Shown: in pieces, positions 22,554 to 62,625 of the stretch
How positions within the stretch are numbered: the first letter of the stretch is position 1
Layout of the letters: each line of letters opens with the position of its first letter
IMG/VR virus record: IMGVR_UViG_3300042891_000711
Location: 62,001 to 126,000 of that record
Strand: one strand, 5' to 3'
DNA: 64,000 nucleotides
The notes under the pieces: generated by a model
The model's input: the letters and a program-made list of their open reading frames with translations, nothing else
Databases searched by the model: none
Told to the model about the DNA's origin: nothing
Program-made: the position numbers and the translations under genes

Positions 22554-22594
22554 AAAAAGGAGAGCTTGACAATTCTCCTTTTTTCACATACAAT
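22554..22594 (+). promoter_or_regulatory. terminator hairpin overlapping sigma70 promoter
   Basis: AAAAAGGAGA...TCTCCTTTTT hairpin with TTGACA (22566) in its loop, 17 bp, TACAAT (22589). Confidence 0.75.
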
Positions 22595-22601
22595 AACTAC
22601 T

Positions 22602-23435
22602 ATGACAGATGCATACTCAACACTAGGCGTACAACGTGGCGCCACAGACGAAGAAATTAAACGAGCTTATCGCAAGCTCGCTGCTAAACATCATCCTGAT
22701 AAAGAAGGTGGTGACACTGCTAAGTTTCAAGAGATACAGGGTGCATACGAAACGCTCTCGGATCCACAGAAACGACAACAACATGATAATCCAAATCCGT
22801 TTGCTGCAGGTGGTAATGGTGGTGGATTTGAATTTCATTTTGGCGGAGGTGGTCCTCAAGATATATTCAGCCAATTCTTTAGCCAACGTGCAGGAAATCC
22901 ATTTCATCAACAATCACAACCAAGACGTAATAAAGACCTACGTATCAATATAACTGTTACCTTAGCCGGTACGTTAAATGAACAACAAAAAACAGTAAGT
23001 GTACAGACTACTAAAAATGATAAGTTTAACGTAGATGTCAAAATACCGCGTGGTGTAAGTAACGGTACAACAATTAAATACACACAAATGGGCGATAACT
23101 TCTTCGAGTCGTTGACACGTGGTGACTTGTATGTTATTATTAATGTAATTGCTGATGCAAGGTTTGAAATACATGGTGTTAATTTAGTTAGTAATTTAGA
23201 AATTTCCTCAATTGAAGCCATGACAGGCACAGAAAAAGAAATAGAAGGCGTTGATGGTAGTACGTTCTTAATTAAGATCCCGCAAGGATGTCAATTTGGT
23301 ACTAAGTTTGGTCTACAAGGCAAAGGTCTATATCAAATGAATACAGACTATCGAGGTGATTTAATTGTTAATACAATAATTAAAACTCCAACATTAACAG
23401 CGGCACAGATAGAAATACTTAAAACAATTAACTAG
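22602..23435 (+). CDS. dnaJ: DnaJ/CbpA-class co-chaperone
   Basis: J-domain with HPD, G/F-rich linker, C-terminal domain, no Zn finger; ATG at 22602. Confidence 0.93.
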
Positions 23436-23449
23436 GCAAGGACTAAACA

Positions 23450-25759
23450 ATGGCAATAAATTCCAATCCCGAAATTGAAGAAATCATTGCGGCTGCAACT
23501 GATCTCGCACGTGATTATAGGCACGAATATGTAACACTCGAGCATTTGTTAATTGCACTCGTTGAATTTAGATCATTTAAGAAGTTGTTAACTGATTATG
23601 GCATTGACACTACACCGCTATTAGCAGACTTATACGAATACACTGCTCAACAGGATCATCTTGTTGACTTGTCGGATAAAGAAATCGTTCCACAACGTAC
23701 ACATAGTTTAGAGCGTGTGTTTAATCGTGCATTTACACAGGTGTTGTTTACAGCACGTGAGCAAATGGAGCCAGTGGATTTATTTCTAAGCATCAGTCAA
23801 GAAACTAATAGTCATGCCGCTTACTTTATGCTTAAATGGGGTATTAACCGTAAAGATCTAGTAAAATATTATGCAGATAAATTTGTCGATGGTAAAGCAG
23901 TCAAGACTAAAGATCCAAAAGTCAAACAGGATTACTCTGATGCAATATTAGAAGAATACTGTACAAATCTAAATGCCGTTGCTACAGAAGGCAAAATTGA
24001 TCCAGTTATTGGCCGTGAATACGAATTAGAAGAAATTGCACAGGTATTAGCACGTCGTCATAAATCCAACGTGCTTATGATTGGTGATCCAGGTGTGGGT
24101 AAAACTGCTATTGCAGAAGGTCTAGCATATAAAATAGTCAACGGTGAAGTGCCAGAATACTTAAAACCCTACACAGTCTATAACTTAGAGATTGGTAGCT
24201 TACTAGCAGGTAGTAAATATCGCGGCGAGTTTGAAGAAAAACTTAAAGATGTACTTGAATCACTGAACACCAAAGGCAATTGTATCTTGTTTATCGACGA
24301 AGCACATCAAATGCAAGGTGCCGGCGCAGGTAGTTCAAGCAGTGTAGATTTTGCTAATATGCTAAAACCTGCACTGGCCAAAGGTGGTATTAAAGTTATT
24401 GCATCAACTACCTACGAAGAATACACACAGTCATTCGAAAAAGACCGTGCGCTAATGCGTCGTTTCTATAAACTAAACATTGACGAGCCTAGTCCAGAAG
24501 TTGCCAAAGATATTTTACTTGGGCTTAAAGGGCACTTTGAAAAGTTCCATAATGGTGTAATCTTAGAAGAAGCAATTGAACTAGCTGTCGACCTAAGTGT
24601 ACGTTATCAAACAGACAAACGCTTACCAGATAAAGCTATTGACCTAATCGACATGAGTTGCGCACGTCTTAAAATTAATAATCCAACTTGGGTAGTTAAT
24701 GGCGATGCAATTGTTGAAACACTAGCTAAAGCAACTAAGATTCCTAAAGAGAATTTTGACAGCAAACATGCATCAACATCATTACCAAGTTTAGAAAGCA
24801 ACATTAAAGATAAACTATACGGACAAGATACCGCAGTTGATGCAGTACTTGAAAAGATTTATGTTGCTAAGGCCGGATTGAAAGCACATAACAAACCAGT
24901 AGGTAACTTTTTATTCTTAGGCCCAACTGGTACAGGTAAGACAGAGTTAGCTAAATTGCTTAGTGAAAACTTAGGTATGAAGTTAATCCGCTTTGATATG
25001 AGTGAATACCAAGAGAAGCATGCTATGGCTAAACTTATCGGCGCTCCCCCGGGCTATGTTGGCTATGAAGATGGTAACTTAGGTGGCGGCTTGCTAATTA
25101 GCGAAGTTGAGCGTAACCCACATTCAATTATCTTACTAGATGAAATTGAAAAGGCTCACCCGGACATCAGTAACTTGTTACTACAGATTATGGACGAAGG
25201 TACTATTACTGGTAGTAACGGTAAGAAAGCGGATTGCCGCAATGCTATGCTAGTATTAACTAGTAACTTAGGTTCAGCAGACAACGAGCAAAACAACATT
25301 GGCTTTGGGCGTGACTTACAAAAATCAGGCGAAGATGATAGTGCTGTTAAAAAGTTCTTCAAACCAGAGTTCCGCAATCGTTTAGATGCAGTTGTTAAAT
25401 TCAACGGACTTGATAAGATTAGCATGAAGAAGATTGTTGTTAAATTCTTAAACGAGCTTAACGAATTGCTTGCAGAGAAACAAATTAAACTACGTTCAAC
25501 AGAAGCACTAGTTGACCACTTAGTTGAAGTTGGATTCGATCGAGCAATGGGCGCACGTCCACTATCACGTAAGATCAGCGAGTTAATCAAAGTGCCGTTG
25601 AGTAAGAAAATCTTGTTTGATAACATTGCCAGTGGCAGTAGTATTACCGCAGACTATGTCAACGATGCTGTAGATTTTATAGTAGTTGATCCAATCGATG
25701 ATATGATTCTATTAGAAAATAAAACAGTTGATGACGAAGGTTTTATTATAGTAGAATAA
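23450..25759 (+). CDS. clpA: ClpA-like AAA+ unfoldase
   Basis: Clp N-domain, GDPGVGKT and [26 protein letters not shown] loop. Confidence 0.93.
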
Positions 25760-31838: not shown

Positions 31839-31860
31839 ATTAAAGGGGCAACCCTTTAAT
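31839..31860. terminator. bidirectional hairpin between convergent genes
   Basis: ATTAAAGGG-GCAA-CCCTTTAAT, GNRA loop. Confidence 0.8.
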
Positions 31861-32302
31861 CGTCCAGTGCTTCTGGCTCTTGTCCGTCTGTTTGTAAATC
31901 CAAGTCTAATTTCTTTAGATACACTTTAACAGCCGACAGTTTACCAAACATACGGCTAGCACGTTTCTTATTAAGATACACACAGAACTTACCGGCTAGA
32001 TCTCGTTTAACTTCAGCTAAGGTATCACGTTTGAATCCAATGTTTGCTGTGTACACAGGCTCAATGTCAGCCATTGTGTCAAAGCCAAGTAATATACTAT
32101 CACCCTTGTTGCCCACCTTGACTAACTTAGTATCAAAGTATCCACTACTATTTGCTCGACGCATGATTATAGCCGCTAACTTAACATTGTTCTCAGCTAC
32201 TTGTATTGTACCGTCGGCGTCAATCCAGTAATCCTCGCCTTCATATGGTCCGTTAATTGGATCACCGATAATTTCATTTAATAGTTCTGCTACTTGTGTC
32301 AT
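31856..32302 (-). CDS. hypothetical early protein
   Basis: ORF with own sigma70 promoter. Confidence 0.7.
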   Translation of the reverse strand: MTQVAELLNEIIGDPINGPYEGEDYWIDADGTIQVAENNVKLAAIIMRRANSSGYFDTKLVKVGNKGDSILLGFDTMADIEPVYTANIGFKRDTLAEVKRDLAGKFCVYLNKKRASRMFGKLSAVKVYLKKLDLDLQTDGQEPEALDD

Positions 32303-32435: not shown

Positions 32436-33128
32436 ATGAGAATATATGATTTAAATCCCGTAGTTAACGAAGATAATGAAATGTCAGATGTCATTACTGC
32501 TCGCGGACTAGTAAATAGAGCATTAGATAATCCCGCTGCACGTCAGGAATACTTTGATTACATGACGCATCTGCGTAATAAACACGGTAAAGAATACAGC
32601 ACACGTATACATCAAAAAGCCACATCATTTGCTAAATCAGTAGACGAAACAATTAAAAAAGTAGGCAGCCAATACGAACTTGTTAGTAAATCGGGTAAGA
32701 ACCTAGGCAAGTATCCTACTAGAGCTGGTGCTGAGAAACGTGAGCAACAGGTTAATTATTTTAAACACGTTAAAGAAGATGCGTGGACTGGTGAAAATCC
32801 ACCGTGGCATAACGGTAATGATCAATGGAATGATGGTACTGACCAATGGCATAGTGCAGATGATGGTGCAGGTAGCAGTGCTGCAACTCCATCATCTGCA
32901 GGTCCGCTAACTGGTGAGATACCAGTTAAAGAAGAGTTTAATGCACAAGATGTTGTTAGTGTTGATGTTCCACTATTAATACGCTTACTTGAATATGCTC
33001 GCGAAGATGCTAAAACAGACATGGATTTACACACAGTAGCTGAACGATTAATTGATCTCAGTCAAGAAGGCGTTACACTAACAATGCAAGATTACGACAC
33101 AATTTGCAACACCAAGGAAACTGATTAA
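32436..33128 (+). CDS. modular putative internal head protein
   Basis: MRIYDLNPVVNE leader; modules after VDE, VKE, VKE. Confidence 0.65.
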   Translation: MRIYDLNPVVNEDNEMSDVITARGLVNRALDNPAARQEYFDYMTHLRNKHGKEYSTRIHQKATSFAKSVDETIKKVGSQYELVSKSGKNLGKYPTRAGAEKREQQVNYFKHVKEDAWTGENPPWHNGNDQWNDGTDQWHSADDGAGSSAATPSSAGPLTGEIPVKEEFNAQDVVSVDVPLLIRLLEYAREDAKTDMDLHTVAERLIDLSQEGVTLTMQDYDTICNTKETD

Positions 33129-35911
33129 TGAGTCTTATAAGTCAAACCAATTCATACACTACACCCGGAACATATACATACACTATTCCTCAAGGAGTAG
33201 GGTCGCTTGAATTTCATATATGGGGTGCAGGTGGAGCTGCAGGTGCATCTGGACCAGCTATTCAGGTACAAAGTGGCACGACTACAGCTCGAATACCAAG
33301 TGGTTCAGAACAAGTTCAAAGTGGAACGACTCGAGTTGAATCTGGTGTAGCACAAATACAAACTGGAACAACACAGGTACAAACTGGCACAACACAAGAA
33401 GCCTATACAGTTACTACTACTTGTTTTCTTGGTAATGCATTAATAAGCACACCATCCGGTCTTGTTGCTATCGAATCGCTGGCAATCGGTGATTTGGTGT
33501 ATGGGTTCGATGCATATAGCGAAACGGGTGAAGTAGTCTATGATGCAGAATTAGTAACATCACCAGTGACTAAATTGTTTAAACATACCTGGGAAGAAGC
33601 TGATGAATTTTCGTATTTGTTAGTAATTACACACGAACAAGGTGTATTAACTGTAACAGGCGGACACGAAATATTAACATCATCAAGAAAAGACACAACC
33701 TGTTATGATGGTTTCGTACGTGCAGAAAATTTAAGAGTAGGCGATGTACTTTATACTGAAGACGGTACTGCTTCTGTAATACAAAACATTATCCGTGGTG
33801 GCGAATATGAGATGGTATACAATCTTGAAATTGATGGTGTACACACATACGTTGCTGATGGCATTCGTGTTCATAATGGTATTATTAATAATAACAATAC
33901 TACCAACACCAAAGGACAATCTACTACTAATACCAAATTCAATAAAGGAACAACAACAAAAACATTGTATCGAGATGTTCCAGTATACGCAACTGTTCCT
34001 GTGTACACTACTGTACCAACTTATAGTGATGTTCCGACATATACTACACAAACTACATTTACTACAGTATATAATCCTGTATATGAATCAGTTTCCGGCG
34101 GTAGTGGTGCCAGCGGTGGGGCAGGCGGTTATGCATCGAGAAAAATCCAAGTTACTGCTGGCGATGTAATCGTAATTTCAGTTGGTAGTGCAGGAGTTGG
34201 ATCCATAGGTGGACAAAGTTCGTCATCAATTGGTTTCAACGGCGGCAATGGCGGAGTATCATCAAACGGTGGACGTGGAGGCGGTGGCGGTGCTGCCACC
34301 GTGATTACTGTAAATGGAACTATTGTTGCAGTTGCCGCAGGCGGCGCCGGTGGTGGCGGTGGCGGAACATCTGGATCGGCAGGTACTGCGGGAACAGCTG
34401 CATCCATTTCAGGAATTGGATCAGGTACACAAGGTGCCGGTCTATCGTCGGTTGCTGGTCCAGCAACAGGTGGCGGAGGCGGTGGTGGTTTTTATAGCGG
34501 ACTTGCTGGTGCAAGCGGTAATGCCGGCGGAGGTGGACAAGGCGGAGTAAGTTTCGGCACAGTAATTTATGGTGGTAGCGGAACAACTCCTGGAGGCAAC
34601 AACATATCAGTTTATCCAGGAAGAAATGTTGGTGCTGCAGCATTTGGTGGTGCAGCTTTATTAATATTCAATAAATCATTTAATATAAATGTAAAACGTG
34701 CTGGAACTTGGAATCCAGTTAACAGTGCCTGGGTTAAAGTCGGTGGTTCATGGAAAGAACTATTAAATGGATGGACTAAAGTTAGTGGTGTATGGAAACC
34801 ATTGATTTCTGCAGATGCTGTAGTTGGTTCTGAAAATTTAACAACTCCTGCTATAACATATTCGTTATCTGCAGATTCAGCAAGTATTACCGAAGGTGAT
34901 TCAGTGGTATTTACACTAGCAACCACAGGTATTGCCGCAGGTACATCGATTCCGTATACTGCTACAGGTATTGCGGCAGCCGATTTATCAGCCGGCGCAT
35001 TAACAGGCAATTTTATTGTTGGCACAACCGATACTATCACATTTACTCCTAGAGAGAATAATACCACAAATGGTACCAGAACATTACGTGTATCTATTGA
35101 TAATTCTACTGCGGCTGCAACTTGTACAGTATTAGACACATCATTGACTCCAGTGTATTCACTTGTCGGCAATGTTGCAACAATAAACGAGGGTGGATCA
35201 GTTACATTTACTTTATCAACTAGTTATGTTGATTCAGGCACAGTAATTCCATATTCAGTTAGTGGCATTAGTGCTGCAGACTTATCATCTGGATCGATGA
35301 CTGGCAATTTTATAGTCGGAAATGTAACCACTGCAGCATTTACTTTAGCATCAGATTCACTCACAGAAGGTGCTGAACGAATAACTATTACCTTACACAG
35401 TGTACCAGGAAGTGCAAGTTGCGCTATAGCTGATACATCGACTACACCTTATGTAGCATTTAGTGGCTCAATTACATTAAGTGGTAATGGTACATGGACT
35501 GTGCCAGATTATGTAACTTCGTTATCTGTTTCAGTAATAGGCGGTGGCGGCGGTGGTGGTGGCAACCACAACAATTGTGGTAACCGAGCACATGCTGGTG
35601 GTGCTGGTGGCGGTGGTTATACAAATTCAGACACACTATCAGTTTCCCCAGGACAAAAATTTACATATCGAGTAGGTGTCGGTGGAGCAGGTGGTGCGGC
35701 TAGTGCATTAGGTGGTACTGGTGTATCTACATTCTTTGGTTCAGTTTCGGCCGCTGGCGGCGGTGGTGGTGGTGGTGGTACGAAAGGCACGGCGGGTGTC
35801 GGTGGAGCAGGCACCAATGGTGGTATAGGCGGCTTATATACAGATAACTTAGGTAAAGCAGGTGGTAGTGGATCCATTAGTCTTTCTTGGACAGGATCAA
35901 GACCAGGATAA
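33128..35911 (+). CDS. glycine-rich tail fibre/adhesin with inserted Hint domain and Calx-beta/Ig-like repeats
   Basis: WGAGG/GGGGG glycine-rich domains, SITEGDSVVFTL repeats, Hint motifs. Confidence 0.8.
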   Translation: MSLISQTNSYTTPGTYTYTIPQGVGSLEFHIWGAGGAAGASGPAIQVQSGTTTARIPSGSEQVQSGTTRVESGVAQIQTGTTQVQTGTTQEAYTVTTTCFLGNALISTPSGLVAIESLAIGDLVYGFDAYSETGEVVYDAELVTSPVTKLFKHTWEEADEFSYLLVITHEQGVLTVTGGHEILTSSRKDTTCYDGFVRAENLRVGDVLYTEDGTASVIQNIIRGGEYEMVYNLEIDGVHTYVADGIRVHNGIINNNNTTNTKGQSTTNTKFNKGTTTKTLYRDVPVYATVPVYTTVPTYSDVPTYTTQTTFTTVYNPVYESVSGGSGASGGAGGYASRKIQVTAGDVIVISVGSAGVGSIGGQSSSSIGFNGGNGGVSSNGGRGGGGGAATVITVNGTIVAVAAGGAGGGGGGTSGSAGTAGTAASISGIGSGTQGAGLSSVAGPATGGGGGGGFYSGLAGASGNAGGGGQGGVSFGTVIYGGSGTTPGGNNISVYPGRNVGAAAFGGAALLIFNKSFNINVKRAGTWNPVNSAWVKVGGSWKELLNGWTKVSGVWKPLISADAVVGSENLTTPAITYSLSADSASITEGDSVVFTLATTGIAAGTSIPYTATGIAAADLSAGALTGNFIVGTTDTITFTPRENNTTNGTRTLRVSIDNSTAAATCTVLDTSLTPVYSLVGNVATINEGGSVTFTLSTSYVDSGTVIPYSVSGISAADLSSGSMTGNFIVGNVTTAAFTLASDSLTEGAERITITLHSVPGSASCAIADTSTTPYVAFSGSITLSGNGTWTVPDYVTSLSVSVIGGGGGGGGNHNNCGNRAHAGGAGGGGYTNSDTLSVSPGQKFTYRVGVGGAGGAASALGGTGVSTFFGSVSAAGGGGGGGGTKGTAGVGGAGTNGGIGGLYTDNLGKAGGSGSISLSWTGSRPG
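33422..33877 (+). other. Hint (intein-like/BIL) domain
   Basis: CFLGNALI (block A), LTVTGGHEI (block B), VYNLEIDGVHTYVADGIRVHN (blocks F/G); +1 residue is Gly. Confidence 0.88.
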
Positions 35912-36315: not shown

Positions 36316-36824
36316 TTTTAAATAATGCCCTCAATGCTGGTAACTTTGTTTACTGCATGATACACTGGAGCCCGCACGAAGAAATTGAATATTTCAACGA
36401 CGGTGATGGCCACTATCATCCATCTGTGTATGTTTTAGAGGGCAAGGGGTGGGCTGAATTTAAAACACCAGAAGGTGAAATATACATAAGTGAAGCCACT
36501 GGCGCTCCAGGAACAATTGTAGATACAAGTCATAGCAAGGGTAATTATCAAATTATCCGTACCATGGATAGTGGACTTACATTGTTTCACATAAACCCTG
36601 TACCAGCAACTAGAAATTTGCACACAGAAATAGTAAACGGTCCCATCACTCGCACAATTACTGCTGGTGATAAACGAGTAGTCGTTGTGGTTATTACGGG
36701 TCCAATTACTGCTAACGGTAAACAACTATCTAGTCTACAACATAGTAAAGTATTTCCCAGCAAGTCAGTAGAATTGATAATTCCAGAGCATGCAATATGC
36801 GCATTAGTGACCGAAATAAACTAG
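36312..36824 (+). CDS. cupin-like hypothetical protein
   Basis: HYH...YVLEGKG beta-rich pattern. Confidence 0.55.
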   Translation: MILNNALNAGNFVYCMIHWSPHEEIEYFNDGDGHYHPSVYVLEGKGWAEFKTPEGEIYISEATGAPGTIVDTSHSKGNYQIIRTMDSGLTLFHINPVPATRNLHTEIVNGPITRTITAGDKRVVVVVITGPITANGKQLSSLQHSKVFPSKSVELIIPEHAICALVTEIN

Positions 36825-37591
36825 CTATTAATCTACTAAATCCCTTTAGACAATTTGCTACGATATTACAACTGCTTTTGCCAGTTAGTATCTATCTTGG
36901 TATAACATCTGATGCAGGTGCAATGTGGTGGCTAGTTGCTGTTTTCTTTTACCTAGTAATCTACACAATGATTGGAAATAATATTGCACTGCATCGTTAT
37001 TTCACGCACGGACACTTTACAGTAGCAAAACCTGTTGAATACTTCTTTTTATGGTGCGGATCTATGATAGGCATGGGCGATCCGTTGAGCTATGCAATGA
37101 CGCATACTGTACATCACAATCCAAAATACACCGATACTCCTTTAGATCCACACGGCCCATCATGCGGACTACGTTCAATTCTATTTTGTTTTCAACGCCC
37201 GATTAATCCCAACATAACTCCTGTATTCAATAGACATGTTTTAGAATTAAGTAAAAGGTATTGGTGGTTACATAGATACTATGTTCCTATTATACTAGCC
37301 AATGCCGCACTTTTATGGATGATTGATTATAAAATATTCTTATTCTGCTGGTTAATCCCTGTGTCATTATCAATTTGGGGTATTGGGTTTGCTGTCTTAA
37401 GACAACATTGGCCAATGAAAGCTAATAACTGCCGTACACATTTAATTGAACCTTGGTACGAAGGTCTGCATTTAAATCATCACAATTGGCCAATGGCTCC
37501 GAATACTGCGATATATACTAATGAAATCGATTACACTTATCAATTTAGTAAAATATTTTTTCCTAAATTTAATACCAAAGGGCAACCGTGA
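36797..37591 (+). CDS. membrane fatty acid desaturase-like protein 1
   Basis: His boxes HRYFTH, HTVHH, HLNHH; DPHGP. Confidence 0.88.
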   Translation: MRISDRNKLAINLLNPFRQFATILQLLLPVSIYLGITSDAGAMWWLVAVFFYLVIYTMIGNNIALHRYFTHGHFTVAKPVEYFFLWCGSMIGMGDPLSYAMTHTVHHNPKYTDTPLDPHGPSCGLRSILFCFQRPINPNITPVFNRHVLELSKRYWWLHRYYVPIILANAALLWMIDYKIFLFCWLIPVSLSIWGIGFAVLRQHWPMKANNCRTHLIEPWYEGLHLNHHNWPMAPNTAIYTNEIDYTYQFSKIFFPKFNTKGQP

Positions 37592-38355
37592 ACAAATTTA
37601 TCAAATGGCTTATTCAACCTAATTATTTTTGGATGACTCTAATGCAGGTTATGTTGCCTGTATATCTATATCTAGCTGTTACCAGTGGTGCAGATTGGCT
37701 GTGGTGGATGGGTAGTTTTATCTTTTACTTCTTATATCTAGCTATCGGTAATAATATTGGCATGCACCGTTATTACTGTCATCATTACTTTACTATGAAC
37801 AGGTCCACAGAATGGTTTGTTGCTTGGTGTGCTATGATGGGCGGCATGGGCAGTCCAATATGCTATGCTAGTATTCATCAAGTACATCATAGAATACACG
37901 ATACTGAACAGGATCCGCATGGTCTAAATCGAGGATGGCGTAGCGTGCTGTACTATTTCCACAGACAAATAGATCAAAAAGAAATTAAATTTAATAGAAA
38001 CATGGCAGAATTAACAAAACGTTACGGATTTGTACATCAATTCTACTGGCCAGTTGTATTTGCTAACGCGGCTATATTTTATTTAATTAGTTGGAAAGCA
38101 TTGCTATTCTTATGGTTAATTCCTTGCAGTTTAACCTTGTGGGCAGTAGCATTAGTATTGTTAATGCAACACGACCAAGATGGTCCAAACAACAGTAGAA
38201 GTTATATGTGGTTTGGCTGGGGCGAAACATGGCATAAAAATCATCACGAAGACCAAAGTCTGGCAGATCATAGTCTAGGCAAGGGCGTCGACTGGACTTA
38301 CCAATTATCCAGATTATTAGCAAATGACCAATCCAATACAAACAAAAACAATTAA
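37588..38355 (+). CDS. membrane fatty acid desaturase-like protein 2
   Basis: HRYYCH, HQVHH, GETWHKNHH; DPHG. Confidence 0.9.
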   Translation: MNKFIKWLIQPNYFWMTLMQVMLPVYLYLAVTSGADWLWWMGSFIFYFLYLAIGNNIGMHRYYCHHYFTMNRSTEWFVAWCAMMGGMGSPICYASIHQVHHRIHDTEQDPHGLNRGWRSVLYYFHRQIDQKEIKFNRNMAELTKRYGFVHQFYWPVVFANAAIFYLISWKALLFLWLIPCSLTLWAVALVLLMQHDQDGPNNSRSYMWFGWGETWHKNHHEDQSLADHSLGKGVDWTYQLSRLLANDQSNTNKNN

Positions 38356-38941
38356 TCTAGATCTGGATCGACTTAAACGCGATGCCAGACGTATTAATAA
38401 TAAAATTATCAAAGCCTATAGTAACTTAGCGGTGCCTGATAATAAGTACTATCAAAACGAGCTAGCTAAACAGTTAGAAGGTGTGCCTATGAGTAGTAAA
38501 TATCATGACTACTATAATGCATTGACCTTTCCTTATCAAGAAATACATCAACTATACCGAGAAGCCTGTACATTCTTTAAGGAAGTTAATCAATATGATC
38601 AACCTTACTGTGTACATGCTTGGTTAAACTATTTAGAAAAAGGCGACAGTATTCCATGGCATAATCATTGGGGTGCCTTAAGTGGCTTGCACGAAACTTA
38701 TGTTTGTAGTTATTACATTAATGCAGAATCTAGCACCACTATATACAAATTCCCCAACGAAACCTACAATGTAGCTTGCAAAAACAACACTATTAACATG
38801 TACGAAGATGTAGGTGATGTTCACATGGTAGAGCCGTGGCAAGGTAATGAGCCGCGCATTAGTATTAGTATGGACTTTGTACCGTTAAAATACGTACATG
38901 CTACACCGTTTGTCTTAAATACTTGGATGCCGGTTGTATAA
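38324..38941 (+). CDS. 2OG-Fe(II) oxygenase-like protein
   Basis: AWLNY...WHNH...SYYI...HMV...RISISMD. Confidence 0.7.
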   Translation: MTNPIQTKTINLDLDRLKRDARRINNKIIKAYSNLAVPDNKYYQNELAKQLEGVPMSSKYHDYYNALTFPYQEIHQLYREACTFFKEVNQYDQPYCVHAWLNYLEKGDSIPWHNHWGALSGLHETYVCSYYINAESSTTIYKFPNETYNVACKNNTINMYEDVGDVHMVEPWQGNEPRISISMDFVPLKYVHATPFVLNTWMPVV

Positions 38942-38974
38942 ATAAACATAGTATATAATTAAGGAAGATTTTCA

Positions 38975-39688
38975 ATGAAAAAACTAGTATTATTAGTAGG
39001 TCTATTATTAAGCGTAAATGCTTATGCAGGCATCAATCAAGAGTGCCCTACACTAACAGCCGCAGGTGCAGCTACATACGCTGCCAAACCAGGCGATCAA
39101 GAAATTTGTCATAAGAACTACGCTGTTATCCATAGCTGTGCAGTTAAAGCACCTATTGCAGTATTTGAACGGTTGTCATTAGAAGACATGACAGGTCCTG
39201 CAAAACGTAAAGACGACTTCCGACCAGATCCAAAAGTTACTCCGGCATGTTCAGCTACCCTAGCTGACTATGCTACTGTAGGTCGTACACATGACCGTGG
39301 ACATATGAGCCCGGCTGGTAACAACACACAAGATCCAGCAATCATGAGTGAAAGTTTCTTCCTAAGCAATATGGAGCCACAAATTGCTAATAACAATCGT
39401 GGTATATGGAAACAGTTAGAAACATACGAACGTGAATGGGCTAAACAACCAGGTACAGATTATTACATTATTAGTGGTGGTATCTTTGATGCAGGCCATC
39501 AAAAAACAGGCAACGGCTTAGGTATTCCTACACGTTTATACAAGATTATTATTGAAAAGAATAGTAAGAAAGTTAAGGCTTACTTGATGCCAAACACAGC
39601 ATTACCTGTAGCAGACTTACCCAAATATGAAACTACAATAGCTAATGTAGAATCAGCAACTGGTCTTAAGTTTGCCCTACCTAAATAA
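38975..39688 (+). CDS. DNA/RNA non-specific endonuclease (NucA/EndA family) with signal peptide
   Basis: DRGHMSPA, SFFLSNMEPQ, NRGIWKQLE; MKKLVLL...NAYA signal. Confidence 0.92.
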   Translation: MKKLVLLVGLLLSVNAYAGINQECPTLTAAGAATYAAKPGDQEICHKNYAVIHSCAVKAPIAVFERLSLEDMTGPAKRKDDFRPDPKVTPACSATLADYATVGRTHDRGHMSPAGNNTQDPAIMSESFFLSNMEPQIANNNRGIWKQLETYEREWAKQPGTDYYIISGGIFDAGHQKTGNGLGIPTRLYKIIIEKNSKKVKAYLMPNTALPVADLPKYETTIANVESATGLKFALPK

Positions 39689-39690
39689 TA

Positions 39691-40455
39691 TTATTTTGCA
39701 GCTAATTTAAAAAATACTCTAACAAAATAATATTGAGGATTTATATACCTAACCCACGTGGGGCCTTTAAATATATGGCTCCACGTGGTATATTTTTCTC
39801 TGAAATCTTGATGATGTTCGTAATGCCACGCTTGATTTAAATTAAGTGGAAACAACCACGGATATGTTTTTTCTCCGTAGTGCAGAAGATAATAATCGTG
39901 TTGTACTTCTAATATAACTTTAAACAATATAGGTAATACGATTATATAGAAGTAATAATCAATACCAAATAATAATATAAAAATAATAGATAGTATCAGC
40001 TCTAGTTCTCGTAGATATTTAATTATAAATGGAAATTCTGTATATTGTTGTAATAAGATATTCATATTATCTATAGATGGCTTGCTAAATGGATTTAATC
40101 CAATCCAAAAATAGAAAATACCTTTATGCAATGTTGTTGTAAATATATCTTTGTCTGTTTTCCAATACAAATGATGATACCAGTGTGTTTTGATAGATGA
40201 CGATTTATCTGCATAAGTGTCCGGACTGACAATATAGATAAAACAATCAATTATATACCTAAAAAAAGTATTTTTTGGAAGTATATATCGATGTTCCACA
40301 TAATCATGGCCTATGATTTCCGCAAACATCCATACTATGTACGTAACAAGTAATGAGATTGTTAATAAATGCCAATTATTAAAATATAATAACCCGCTAA
40401 CGGCTATTATAATATAAGCATGCTGTTTAATAAATTCTATTAGAGTTTGTTTCAT
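39691..40455 (-). CDS. divergent desaturase-like membrane protein 3
   Basis: HDYVEH, HWYHH, HYEHH plus TM helices. Confidence 0.72.
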   Translation of the reverse strand: MKQTLIEFIKQHAYIIIAVSGLLYFNNWHLLTISLLVTYIVWMFAEIIGHDYVEHRYILPKNTFFRYIIDCFIYIVSPDTYADKSSSIKTHWYHHLYWKTDKDIFTTTLHKGIFYFWIGLNPFSKPSIDNMNILLQQYTEFPFIIKYLRELELILSIIFILLFGIDYYFYIIVLPILFKVILEVQHDYYLLHYGEKTYPWLFPLNLNQAWHYEHHQDFREKYTTWSHIFKGPTWVRYINPQYYFVRVFFKLAAK

Positions 40456-41233
40456 TTTTGGTAAATGCTATTAAAAATATCCAATACTGTAAGTTGATAT
40501 ATTTCCACCATTTACTGCCAAAATATAATTTATTTGGATTTTTATGATGACTAACGTGATATGCTGTATTAAACCAAATTGGTAACATCCATGGTAAATC
40601 TTTACAAGGTCGTTTACTTGTATGAAAAAAGATATCAGGGCCTGCACAATATACTATTACTATATATGTAAGAGGTAATACATAAAAAGATATGTAATTA
40701 GCAACGCCGAATAACAATATGTATACCACACTACATATTGTTAGTATCGTAAATCGATAGTTAACCAACCAATCAGGATAGTACCAAGTTGGCTGATACC
40801 TCGACACATCAATATCTAACATCATTGATGGTGTTGTTTTTTTATCAATCATGGTAAATGTATTACAAAAAAACATAAAGGTATTTTCATTGACTGCCGC
40901 TGTAACTGGATCTTGATTGATAAACCAAAATTTATGATGTATTATATGGCCGACAATATAACCTTTTTGATTTTTGGCCGATACAAATGGGGAATATATA
41001 TACGCTATCACTAAAAATAAATATCGTGTCAGTGAATGTTTAAATGTAATTATATTGTGTTGAGCATACTCATGAACAAATAATGTCAACATTGCGCATA
41101 TAACATATGAAAATATAAATCCCGATACCAGATTAACATAACCTAAATATGTCATTATGCTTAAAAATATAAGCAATAAAAGATAATAATAATCAACAAT
41201 TTTTATTTTAATAAAATTTAATAAGTTTAACAT
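40427..41233 (-). CDS. divergent desaturase-like membrane protein 4
   Basis: HEYAQH, HIIHH, HVSHH; start reassigned to ATG 41233 (MLNLLNF). Confidence 0.72.
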   Translation of the reverse strand: MLNLLNFIKIKIVDYYYLLLLIFLSIMTYLGYVNLVSGFIFSYVICAMLTLFVHEYAQHNIITFKHSLTRYLFLVIAYIYSPFVSAKNQKGYIVGHIIHHKFWFINQDPVTAAVNENTFMFFCNTFTMIDKKTTPSMMLDIDVSRYQPTWYYPDWLVNYRFTILTICSVVYILLFGVANYISFYVLPLTYIVIVYCAGPDIFFHTSKRPCKDLPWMLPIWFNTAYHVSHHKNPNKLYFGSKWWKYINLQYWIFLIAFTKNETNSNRIY

Positions 41234-41238
41234 AGTAA

Positions 41239-41250
41239 TATTTATAAATA
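41239..41250. promoter_or_regulatory. bidirectional late-promoter palindrome
   Basis: TATTTATAAATA gives TATAAATA on both strands between divergent genes. Confidence 0.75.
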
Positions 41251-41279
41251 CTAATTGTAAACAAAAATAAAGGTCCGGT

Positions 41280-42017
41280 ATGAAAATAACTGAAGGTGGG
41301 AATGTATTTAAACTAGCTGATGGTAGCGAAGCAACCGGACGTATCAATCGTGCAGATGTCATTCCTACAGTTAAATGGTTAGAGCAATTAACAGGACTTA
41401 ATCTAGTAGACAATATGCTAGGGTCAACTGGCTACAAAGAAACAAGTGGCGACCTAGACCTAGCAGTTGATGTAAGTAAAATCAGCAAAGATGTACTGGT
41501 ACAACAACTATTAAAGAAAGGCATTGAACCTACTGACATTAAAAAGACAGGCGACAGCGTACATTTTAAAACACCCATCAACGGTGAAGCAAAGAACGGC
41601 TACGTACAAACTGACTTTATGTTTGGTGATCCAAACTTCCAACGTTTTAGTATGACAGGTAGTCCAGAAGGTAGCCCATTCAAAGGCATGCATCGTCATG
41701 TATTACTTGCTAGTATTGCTAAAGCACAGGGCATGAAATGGTCATACAAGAATGGCCTAATGGACCGTACTACAAACGAAGTTATTTCAAAAGATCCAAG
41801 TGAAATTGCACACAAACTATTCAATGGTAGTGCCGCTGATCTAGCATCAGTTGAAACTATCGTTGCTAAGATTAAAAATCTACCTAACTACAATGCCTTA
41901 GTAGCAGATGCACGTGAAACATTAGGCAAGGAAAATGTACAACTACCGGAATCACAGCAGGCAATAGTAGGCGAAGGTTCGGCAGCATGGTTTAAGAACT
42001 GGAAGTCAGTGCTGTGA
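41280..42017 (+). CDS. Pol-beta superfamily nucleotidyltransferase with leader
   Basis: MKITE leader; LGSTG...SGDLDLAVD...VQTDFM. Confidence 0.8.
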   Translation: MKITEGGNVFKLADGSEATGRINRADVIPTVKWLEQLTGLNLVDNMLGSTGYKETSGDLDLAVDVSKISKDVLVQQLLKKGIEPTDIKKTGDSVHFKTPINGEAKNGYVQTDFMFGDPNFQRFSMTGSPEGSPFKGMHRHVLLASIAKAQGMKWSYKNGLMDRTTNEVISKDPSEIAHKLFNGSAADLASVETIVAKIKNLPNYNALVADARETLGKENVQLPESQQAIVGEGSAAWFKNWKSVL

Positions 42018-61728: not shown

Positions 61729-62625
61729 GTGAACGTAAAACTATTATCTACAGATGGTAAAGGTACATTCCAAGAAATGGATTGGGATAAACCAGCAATT
61801 ACCGACGACGAAATTGAAGTGCGGGCAGTATTAACAGGTGTATGCCGCAGTGACATTGATATGATGCAGGGTGAGTTTGGTCCATTACCTATTAGTATGC
61901 ACGGACACGAAGGACTTGGACAAGTTACTAACGTTGGCGCCAATATTAAAGATGTCAGCATTGGTGATTACGTAGCCACCCGCGGTGAGCCTGCTTATGC
62001 AGATATGTACAATGTTAGGGCACGAGAATATGTCAGTGTGCCCACAGCAGAACCTAAATACATATTAGAACCTGTTGCTTGTGGTATTAATGTAGTCTAT
62101 CAAAACTTGCGCGAAGTTGCCGAACGTTCTGGTGAAGGTCGTCGCTTGTTAATATTGGGCAGTGGCTTCCTTGCATGGGTAGCGTATAACACCTTGTTAA
62201 TTAATCATTTAGAGTTTGATATCACAGTAATTGGTCGCAGTAATCAAGACTTGTGGCAGGGTAAATTATCTCAAGAAATTACTGGTGTTTATGATGTTAT
62301 TATTGATTTAACTGAACGCACTGATTATCTACAAGGCGACTGTGTTGCAAATAATGGTTTAATCATTATTGGTACTGACAAACATATTAATCAAACATTT
62401 GGACAATTGATTTGGAAAGCCGTTACTATTAGTTTCCCAAGCCCACGAACACCACGCTTTTATGAAGCAATGGTGTTAGCACGTGATTGGGTTGCTTCTG
62501 GTCAATTAACCGTTGACAAGTTCTGGACAAAGTCGTATAATAGAAAGATAGAGTGGCAATCTGCATTTGCAGATGGCGTTAATAGACCAGCAGGCTACAG
62601 TAGAGGATACATTAAGTGGGATTAA
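61729..62625 (+). CDS. zinc-dependent MDR alcohol/sugar dehydrogenase
   Basis: GVCRSD, GHEGLG, LEPVAC, ILGSG. Confidence 0.88.
   Translation: MNVKLLSTDGKGTFQEMDWDKPAITDDEIEVRAVLTGVCRSDIDMMQGEFGPLPISMHGHEGLGQVTNVGANIKDVSIGDYVATRGEPAYADMYNVRAREYVSVPTAEPKYILEPVACGINVVYQNLREVAERSGEGRRLLILGSGFLAWVAYNTLLINHLEFDITVIGRSNQDLWQGKLSQEITGVYDVIIDLTERTDYLQGDCVANNGLIIIGTDKHINQTFGQLIWKAVTISFPSPRTPRFYEAMVLARDWVASGQLTVDKFWTKSYNRKIEWQSAFADGVNRPAGYSRGYIKWD

Follow-up and report, generated by a model that had tools for sequence, protein, structure and literature searches.

A predicted bacterial intein-like Hint domain at the tip of a repeat-built stalk in a glycine-rich jumbo phage protein

A stretch of 64,000 nucleotides (positions 62,001 to 126,000 of the IMG/VR virus record IMGVR_UViG_3300042891_000711, hereafter the window) was analysed for a gene that encodes a protein of 927 amino acids (aa) with a Hint domain in it. 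From its N-terminus onwards, the protein consists of a first glycine-rich domain (TNF-like + GlyR) bearing a stalk and the Hint, a W-rich repeat linker, two Calx-beta-like repeats and a second glycine-rich domain (coordinates in Table 1). The genome record is a 219-kb viral contig estimated to be 62% complete, and is therefore attributed to a jumbo phage; a search of the whole record found this gene to be its only Hint gene and its only Gly_rich_2 gene. An earlier note, made from the letters of the DNA, had described a Hint domain on a repeat-built stalk inserted into a glycine-rich tail fibre.

The Hint extends from Cys99 to Asn250 (152 aa) and is followed by Gly251 at the +1 position, the junction reading IRVHN-G. 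Its motifs are the nucleophile Cys99, block B TxxH (Thr177 to His180, VTGGHE), block F VYNLEIDGVHTY and the C-terminal pair His249-Asn250. No endonuclease family was matched in a Pfam scan and, at 152 aa, the domain is too small to house one; the earlier note was exact in placing at 33422-33877 a Hint without endonuclease, with an HN-G end and without Cys/Ser/Thr at +1. The Pfam family PT-HINT (PF07591) matched above its cut-off of 27.7 bits both in the whole protein (E 8e-11, 42.7 bits) and in the insert alone (46.5 bits). Hint_2 also exceeded its own cut-off, Intein_splicing fell below its own, the Pfam profile Hint (Hog) reached 26.4 vs a cut-off of 29.7, and NCBIfam added only TIGR01443, the intein C-terminal motif. 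The top match of the Hint in a sequence search of the PDB (phmmer) was the bacterial intein-like (BIL) domain of C. thermocellum (2LWY, E 2e-6), and the block F/G pattern VYNxxVxxxHTY...VHN is common to both. Folded alone with AlphaFold2 (AF2, 36 sequences), the Hint reached a predicted local distance difference test score (pLDDT) of 88 and a predicted template modelling score of 0.83, and a Foldseek search with this model again placed 2LWY first (template modelling score, TM, 0.85 normalised to the target; 30% identity), followed by Tetrahymena BUBL BIL2 (6Y75; TM 0.77 normalised to the target), mini-inteins and Hedgehog, with a probability of 1.0 for 2LWY, 6Y75 and the mini-inteins.

Because the best matches by sequence and by fold are both BILs and PF07591 lies above its cut-off, the Hint is identified as an A-type BIL, or PT-HINT, domain; it has every testable defining feature of such a domain, its autocatalysis being predicted. 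BILs are described as domains of variable secreted proteins of bacteria (and ciliates), and the A-type is said to go back to Amitai 2003 and Dassa 2004. They are located in hypervariable regions of non-conserved proteins (PMC7765530), and the Hint of the window likewise stands away from any conserved enzyme site, in a distal loop of variable length and content. Having no +1 nucleophile, BILs cannot form the branched intermediate and mostly cleave, and those of type A, which end in His-Asn, may splice through an attack on the N-terminal thioester by the amine that Asn cyclisation sets free, cleavage products being dominant (PMC4031507); the statement in the earlier note that Hints without a +1 nucleophile cleave rather than splice canonically is consistent with this chemistry.

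The profile matches also bring up a canonical mini-intein with four-step splicing, in line with TIGR01443 and the weak Intein_splicing matches, and a pretoxin module that releases a C-terminal toxin, as the name of the best Pfam family ('pretoxin HINT') would have it; we give these two readings next to no weight. A class 1 intein requires Cys/Ser/Thr at +1, whereas the residue here is Gly251, because of which the branched intermediate cannot form, and the insertion is in a variable loop rather than in the conserved site of an essential enzyme. The canonical intein was ruled out by this Gly together with the absence of C/S/T at +1 throughout the clade described below. No homing endonuclease was recognisable inside the Hint or nearby, the only neighbour on the opposite strand (31856-32302) having no Pfam match; mini-inteins likewise lack an endonuclease, and its absence alone does not exclude intein membership. 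Downstream of the Hint only glycine-rich and Calx-like domains follow, residues 251-927 matching only Gly_rich_2 and glycine-rich fibre-type PHROGs and nothing significant in the PDB sequence search, and the pretoxin module was ruled out for want of a toxin family there. Nor does the domain belong to the Hedgehog Hog group, in which the Hint closes the signalling domain at its C-terminal end and a sterol-recognition region comes after it, since it ends in HN, is followed by 677 aa of host protein and scores below the Hog cut-off.

When the Hint alone was used in a word-based protein search, only three proteins were found (5-mer seeding), and pattern scans of viral and genome contigs were used instead. 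The scan of IMG/VR with the Hint alignment returned 524 relatives, of which the best 80 were taken together with the matches of the protein search, giving 94 Hints with identities to the window's Hint of only 31-59%. Of these, 93 begin with Cys and one with Ser, all end in VHN, and the YN..HT of block F is conserved too. At +1 there are 49 Ala, 26 Gly, 18 Lys and one Ile, while Cys, Ser and Thr do not occur; an alignment of 36 Hints shows no variation in TxxH or RVHN. The members occur in four protein contexts. Three genes, including the window's, carry the Hint at a stalk tip. In glycine-rich, GP38-like proteins of ~430 aa (L005-L012, L015, L019; e.g. L005:3482-4801) it is set into GGGYSSTSST-C...HN-GGGGGGG, with 7-10 glycines after it, and these are the closest relatives of the window's Hint (40-59% identical). 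Others lie in different loops of two-domain glycine-rich proteins (P0034-P0055). Lastly, dozens of IMG/VR contigs (L013, L016-L018, L020-L084; e.g. L020:167-3919, L026:3938-8329) encode gpJ-type tip attachment proteins of 1250-1530 aa (PF24801 FNIII-A_GpJ, PF13550) with a Hint of 129-163 aa at residues ~20-165, which leaves an N-extein of only ~20-35 aa and is flanked by polyglycine (GGGGGG-C...RVHN-A/K/G GGG). In the Hint tree, the three stalk-tip Hints form one clade (support 100/98), whose sister group (100/98) consists of the Hints from the ~430-aa proteins, and all Hints of glycine-rich proteins nest among those of gpJ; the Hint of P0040 nests among the C-terminal-site Hints, though it stands at a different site of the protein.

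As far as these scans reach, the Hint clade is found mainly in viral contigs. Among one genome per prokaryotic species, the nearest relative was 43% identical and lay on a 17-kb contig of a Saccharibacteria metagenome-assembled genome, while all others were at most 38% identical. The cellular relatives (L087-L099; PT-HINT type, ~28-38% identical, many from Ruminococcus and Clostridia) end, among the examples printed, in VHN plus a variable residue, often then Cys, in contrast to the VHN + G/A/K + glycines of the phage clade, and both the distance and these ends speak further against a canonical intein or a pretoxin module.

Compared with the A-type BIL of C. thermocellum (BIL4, 2LWY), the window's Hint is alike in its HINT fold, Cys1, TxxH, block F VYNxxVxxxHTY, His-Asn end, lack of a +1 nucleophile and lack of an endonuclease, as well as in its site in a variable region of a non-conserved surface-type protein. 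It differs in that identity is ~30%, the host is a phage protein, activity is here predicted, the +1 residue of its clade is G/A/K (one Ile), often before polyglycine, and the domain sits at a beta-hairpin tip inside a glycine-rich domain. With Tetrahymena thermophila BUBL BIL2 (6Y75 / 6TMM) it shares the fold, and the BIL2 thioester is resolved by an amine and not by a +1 side chain; however, identity is 18-19%, and BIL2 is flanked by ubiquitin-like domains and yields a Lys isopeptide conjugate, a substrate context that is absent around the window's Hint. Class 1 mini-inteins (Ssp/Npu DnaB, gp41-1) are similar in fold, in blocks A, B, F and G, in their sporadic presence among orthologs and in a genealogy discordant with the host gene, but the window's Hint has no +1 C/S/T, lies outside the conserved active-site region of a replication or repair enzyme and could not splice canonically.

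The Hint is flanked by two arrays of short repeats, which are present as the earlier note had listed them: units of seven residues on the N-side (QVQSGTT, QIQTGTT, QVQTGTT; within residues 44-98) and of six on the C-side (VPVYAT, VPVYTT, VPTYSD, VPTYTT; within residues 275-322). Both are visible in the DNA to Tandem Repeats Finder with periods of 21 and 18, and they cannot be put down to chance, as they are kept in at least 16 homologs with co-varying lengths. An AF2 model of residues 1-520 (56-row alignment) shows DSSP strands at 45-98 and 275-322 with a block-mean pLDDT of ~77-93, the glycine-rich core being above 90. With ESMFold2, run without alignments on residues 1-98 and 251-520 as two chains, the interface score ipSAE was 0.90 vs 0.00 for the best of three controls, in a test whose pass mark was attained by 51 solved complexes out of 78 and 2 mismatched pairs out of 108; ~515 confident contacts were predicted between 2-98 and 274-365, with a partner pLDDT of 87 and runs agreeing in at least 97% of contacts. 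The two-chain model supports, as a prediction, a pairing of the arms without a covalent tip, and makes no statement about events in the cell.

The comparison of arm lengths points in the same direction. Across 17 homologs they co-vary with a Pearson r of 0.97 and a slope of 0.83, near 6/7, the (N,C) pairs being (57,52), (64,58), (71,64), (85,76), (92,82) and (105,93); these homologs are related, so the p-value of the covariation overstates their independence, and six different length classes are present. The single outlier, P0005, has extra hexads upstream of the measuring anchor. With two predictors and the comparative lengths in agreement, the heptad and hexad arrays are predicted to pair as a ~50-residue beta-hairpin. 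The earlier note had proposed that the two arrays zip into a long beta-hairpin, and this pairing was borne out by the AF2 strands, the ipSAE and the covariation, albeit not residue for residue, since one heptad pairs with one hexad. As the N arm changes in steps of 7 and the C arm in steps of 6, the stalk is understood to grow by one heptad plus one hexad per step, and to be a ribbon with a regular bulge instead of a strict residue-for-residue hairpin; at ~50 residues per strand and the usual rise per residue it would be roughly 15-18 nm long.

The domain that carries the stalk belongs to a known fold group, in which polyglycine motifs are stacked against a beta sandwich. In a Foldseek search with the host-domain model, the best matches were the TG domains of LTK/ALK (probability 0.9-1.0, E 2e-3 to 2e-2, the modest E and low TM being those of a model that includes the stalk and a badly modelled Hint), and a cyanophage Pam3 fibre was found lower down. 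Membership in the TG / Gly_rich_2 group is seen in both copies, the C-terminal one passing PF21722 and the N-terminal one aligning to ~55 family members, and relatives match Pfam GP38 and Gly_rich_2. Domains of this kind make up the end of the tail fibre that binds the receptor in Pam3 gp24 and S16 gp38, where the loop tips between the glycine motifs are variable (PMC9608196). In contrast to the protein of the window, the solved TG domains (ALK/LTK ectodomain, Pam3 gp24, S16 gp38) have loops that bear neither a hairpin stalk made of repeats nor a nested domain nor a Hint. On the strength of the LTK/ALK TG and Pam3 fold matches, the GP38 matches and the Pam3/S16 precedent, the jumbo phage protein, glycine-rich and with several domains, can reasonably be called adhesin- or fibre-like; the tail-fibre PHROG matches are weak (phrog_863 E 4e-10, phrog_6202 E 1e-3), and we use the label 'tail fibre' with reserve.

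Of the 125 relatives that residues 1-520 brought up in a word-based protein search, the bulk are free of the insert (P0065-P0122): their residues 1-45 align to query residues 5-44 and their residues 39-260 to query residues 323-519. The ~279 additional aa of the query build out a single loop, the one that follows the first glycine motif of glycine-rich domain 1; in the protein's own glycine-rich domain 2, the loop at the equivalent place has only 11 aa (NHNNCGNRAHA). Among the close orthologs (MSLISQT... proteins, 50-80% identical), the Hint is present only in P0003 and P0004, whereas P0005 to P0019 and others have both repeat arrays and a distal loop of 27-46 aa rich in N/S/K/G without it; overall, 14 of the 17 close orthologs analysed have the stalk and no Hint. 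Shared gene order around L002 (no Hint), L004 and L085 (both with Hint) identifies these proteins as true orthologs of the window's. The insertion is clean, directly after ...QEAYTV(S/T)xT and before the loop, the host sequence being complete and the Hint-bearing alleles keeping the 35-aa tip. The stalk, being present in orthologs without the Hint, is judged from this comparison to be ancestral and older than the Hint, and only the 152-aa Hint to have been added, in the distal loop. The earlier note had called for homologs with and without the insert to be compared, and had the insert interrupting the glycine-rich domain, as it does; its view of the stalk as part of the Hint insert has to be given up.

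The same loop accommodates an entire glycine-rich domain in no fewer than 14 other relatives (P0026-P0033, P0036, P0048, P0057-P0063); this nested domain resembles the query's C-terminal glycine-rich domain (E down to 5e-28) and stands between arms that range widely in length (~25 to 120 aa). The stalk tip is a display site for a K/N/G-rich loop, a nested glycine-rich domain or a Hint, the last in three known alleles including the window's. As a separate observation, the orthologs P0017, P0021 and P0023-P0025 carry another insert of ~130 aa (…SAGSAKPLVE…WTAFRTQWPNRKFY…), which interrupts a second loop of the glycine-rich core (query position 363/364).

The distribution of the Hint bears on whether it serves a programmed maturation, in which a required cleavage at both of its ends would open the tip or release the Hint and so activate the fibre, as the earlier note had suggested in writing that autocleavage matures the fibre tip. 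Such a role would agree with the strict conservation of catalytic residues under purifying selection and with a clade in which no member has a +1 nucleophile, so that cleavage is likelier than canonical splicing; in gpJ tail-tip proteins, the related Hint at the N-terminus might cut off a short leader. Still, the same stalk and tip are found without the Hint in the 14 of 17 orthologs, from which it follows that the fibre can do without the domain; on both sides of the Hint the host sequence is complete, and the genealogy of the Hint, discordant with the host gene, looks like that of a mobile element; maturation as an essential step is therefore unlikely.

Among the three Hint-bearing genes, the ratio of non-synonymous to synonymous rates (dN/dS) of the Hint is 0.09-0.22 at dS 0.5-1.0, from which the domain is seen to be maintained by purifying selection. 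These ratios, along with catalytic positions that are kept across all 94 sequences despite their divergence, make it improbable that the Hint is an inactive structural tip, that is, a folded knob or binding module without self-processing, as a pure scaffold would not be expected to keep such positions; in favour of such a tip stands the folded nested glycine-rich domain that other alleles show at the same place.

The Hint and its host gene have different histories. In the pair P0003/P0004, the values for the Hint are dN 0.049 and dS 0.54, vs dN 0.28-0.37 and dS 0.9-1.5 for the arms, the linker and the glycine-rich core; the pair of the window and P0003 shows the opposite pattern (Hint dN 0.198, dS 0.93; flanks dN 0.08-0.14, dS 0.42-0.63). 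In a host-gene tree built without the stalk and the Hint, P0004 groups with P0011 (support 99), and P0005 and P0006 group with the window's gene and P0003, none of P0005, P0006 and P0011 having a Hint; a tree constrained to hold the three Hint-bearing genes as one clade is worse by 77 log-likelihood units (approximately unbiased test, p = 9e-7). Given these discordant genealogies, the Hint was either exchanged between diverged alleles or gained and lost repeatedly, and it is, on the evidence of the trees, mobile, presumably by recombination, between alleles and between loops of glycine-rich and tail proteins. Its movement by recombination in glycine-codon-rich flanks during co-infection would be our guess. 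Composition gives no sign of foreign origin, the GC content of the Hint (0.36-0.42) being the same as that of its surroundings, and is uninformative here.

In the reading that we prefer, with a probability of roughly 0.6, an active and mobile A-type BIL would excise itself and leave a ligated or a nicked stalk. As to whether processing occurs and with what products, this reading reaches beyond the anatomy, fold, family, conserved catalytic residues, purifying selection and mobility on which it is built. After folding, Cys99 would make a thioester with Thr98 by an N-S acyl shift, Asn250 would cyclise and free Gly251, and the Hint would depart. The host pieces would stay assembled, because residues 1-98 are integral to the domain and the hairpin (>500 predicted contacts), and they would be re-joined if the Gly251 amine attacks the thioester, or else remain as a nicked two-chain protein; either product would resemble the orthologs without the Hint. 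The adjacent N- and C-termini of the Hint would fit a hairpin end and exposed loop tips would tolerate such a domain, and the limitation of +1 to G/A/K, often before polyglycine, fits a presumed need for an unhindered amine.

Several points weigh against the self-excising BIL and the stalk model behind it. Self-processing is predicted, for the window's protein as for every clade member, from sequence features. The two-chain test splits a single domain, so that a pass was to be expected and comes close to a tautology; both structure predictions are of monomers, and a two-stranded ribbon of 50 residues may need oligomerisation. The Hint, covered by only three sequences, is badly modelled in the whole-domain AF2 model, which does not give its placement on the stalk. 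Ordinary mosaic recombination that broke the gene near the Hint could account for part of the discordance between the genealogies, and a homing endonuclease that would explain mobility was not found in the Hint or nearby. Finally, +1 G/A/K and the glycine-rich flanks are strongly conserved, which might point to a function under selection that goes further than selfish persistence.

A further reading is covalent coupling to another molecule, also raised in the earlier note, for which Tetrahymena BUBL BIL2 would be a precedent. The Cys99 thioester would be captured by an outside amine or hydroxyl (a lysine of a virion protein, a lysine of the K-rich tip loop or a molecule of the host surface), and the C-terminus of residues 1-98 would become attached at the far end of the stalk, comparable to Hedgehog and Tetrahymena BIL2. 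Hedgehog transfers to cholesterol, and BIL2 passes a ubiquitin-like domain on to lysines. The second-best structural match of the Hint, Tetrahymena BUBL BIL2, forms Lys isopeptide bonds to other proteins without ATP (PMC8616854), and the Hint is located at the most exposed point of the stalk, with four lysines in the loop after it, while 18 of the 94 clade members have +1 Lys and the flanks in the clade are G/K-rich. However, K/N/G-rich loops also occur in Hint-less orthologs, so the lysines are not specific to the Hint, and the domain is dispensable in most alleles, with a genealogy more like that of a mobile element than of an adapted tip function. No partner gene restricted to Hint-bearing loci was seen when L002, L004 and L085 were compared, and nothing points to an acceptor, which leaves coupling quite unlikely. 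Its boldest form, in which the Hint would be a one-shot chemical warhead at the end of the ~15-18 nm stalk whose thioester is captured by an amine of the host surface or of a partner virion protein for covalent anchoring, we regard as a long shot; if true, the N-terminal Hints of gpJ would act alike inside the tail tip, and phage adsorption or assembly would have its first example of an attachment step that is covalent and driven by a Hint.

Table 1. Coordinates of the gene and of the parts of its protein in the window
Feature	Residues	Position in window	Strand	Basis
Whole gene	927 aa	33128..35911	+	ORF list and translation; Pfam and PHROG scans; orthologs in same gene order
N-terminal beta strands and first glycine-rich motif HIWGAGGAAG of glycine-rich domain 1	1-43	33128..33256	+	
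N arm of stalk, ~8 heptads xVQ(S/T)GTx, ending QEAYTVTTT	44-98	33257..33421	+	Sequence, DNA period 21, AF2 strand
Mini Hint, predicted A-type BIL / PT-HINT	99-250	33422..33877	+	PF07591, invariant catalytic columns, AF2, 2LWY top match
Gly251 (+1) and N/T/K/G-rich distal stalk loop GIINNNNTTNTKGQSTTNTKFNKG	251-274	33878..33949	+	Sequence; low pLDDT in model
C arm of stalk, ~8 hexads, aromatic every sixth position	275-322	33950..34093	+	Sequence, DNA period 18, AF2 strand
Remainder of glycine-rich domain 1 (GGAGGY to LLIFNKSFNI), polyglycine motifs	323-520	34094..34687	+	AF2 pLDDT mostly >90; aligns with 56 family members
Glycine-rich domain 2 (Pfam Gly_rich_2, PF21722)	785-915	35480..35872	+	E 3.8e-9, above cut-off; genome search gives same place

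Outside the stalk and the Hint, AF2 places strands at residues 5-10, 14-19 and 24-32 of the N-terminal segment (pLDDT >=90), and W32, G35 and G36 are invariant across the family alignment. Glycine-rich domain 1 is joined to the two Calx-beta-like repeats by residues 521-613 (window 34688-34966), which carry the repeated W-x-K-x-x-G-x-W motif WNPVNSAWVKVGGSWKELLNGWTKVSGVWKPL (phrog_25859); the motif is also found behind the glycine-rich domain in many relatives and may be an oligomerisation element. Against GenBank phages, the gene had no match by megablast and only partial, low-identity matches by tblastn (coverage <=20%).

The neighbouring genes encode DnaJ, a ClpA-like ATPase, a cytidylyltransferase, oxygenase/desaturase-like proteins and a non-specific nuclease, and hold no recognisable structural module. 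The DnaJ gene (22566-23435; DnaJ and DnaJ_C domains) adjoins that of a 769-aa ClpA/ClpB-like double AAA+ ATPase (23450-25759; phrog_4871 E 2e-240), a chaperone pair which to our knowledge is unusual for a phage. Downstream, genes at 36797-41413 of the window resemble fatty-acid desaturases or 2OG oxygenases (weak FA_desaturase and phrog_81 matches), and the orthologous locus without Hint has an extra ketoacyl synthase and three desaturase genes (L002:9752-13270); the desaturase/oxygenase genes may be a lipid-modifying auxiliary module. The non-specific nuclease (Endonuclease_NS) is conserved at 38975-39688.

What would be new here is that a BIL occurs in a phage, at a site of a new type and within a clade of viral contigs; in the literature searched, no description of the phage Hint clade, of the N-terminal Hints of gpJ or of the 7:6 repeat hairpin was found, which is not proof that none exists. 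Taken as predicted, the Hints form a coherent BIL-type clade in structural-type proteins of phages, with a fixed catalytic set, no +1 nucleophile and signs of endonuclease-free movement between alleles, and would offer a tractable natural system for the role of BILs, the spread of Hints without endonuclease and the re-joining of chains by a +1 Gly amine. The 7:6 repeat hairpin, bearing a loop, a nested domain or a Hint, would be a simple display scaffold of tunable length in receptor-binding-type domains, and could serve the engineering of phage host range and protein design.

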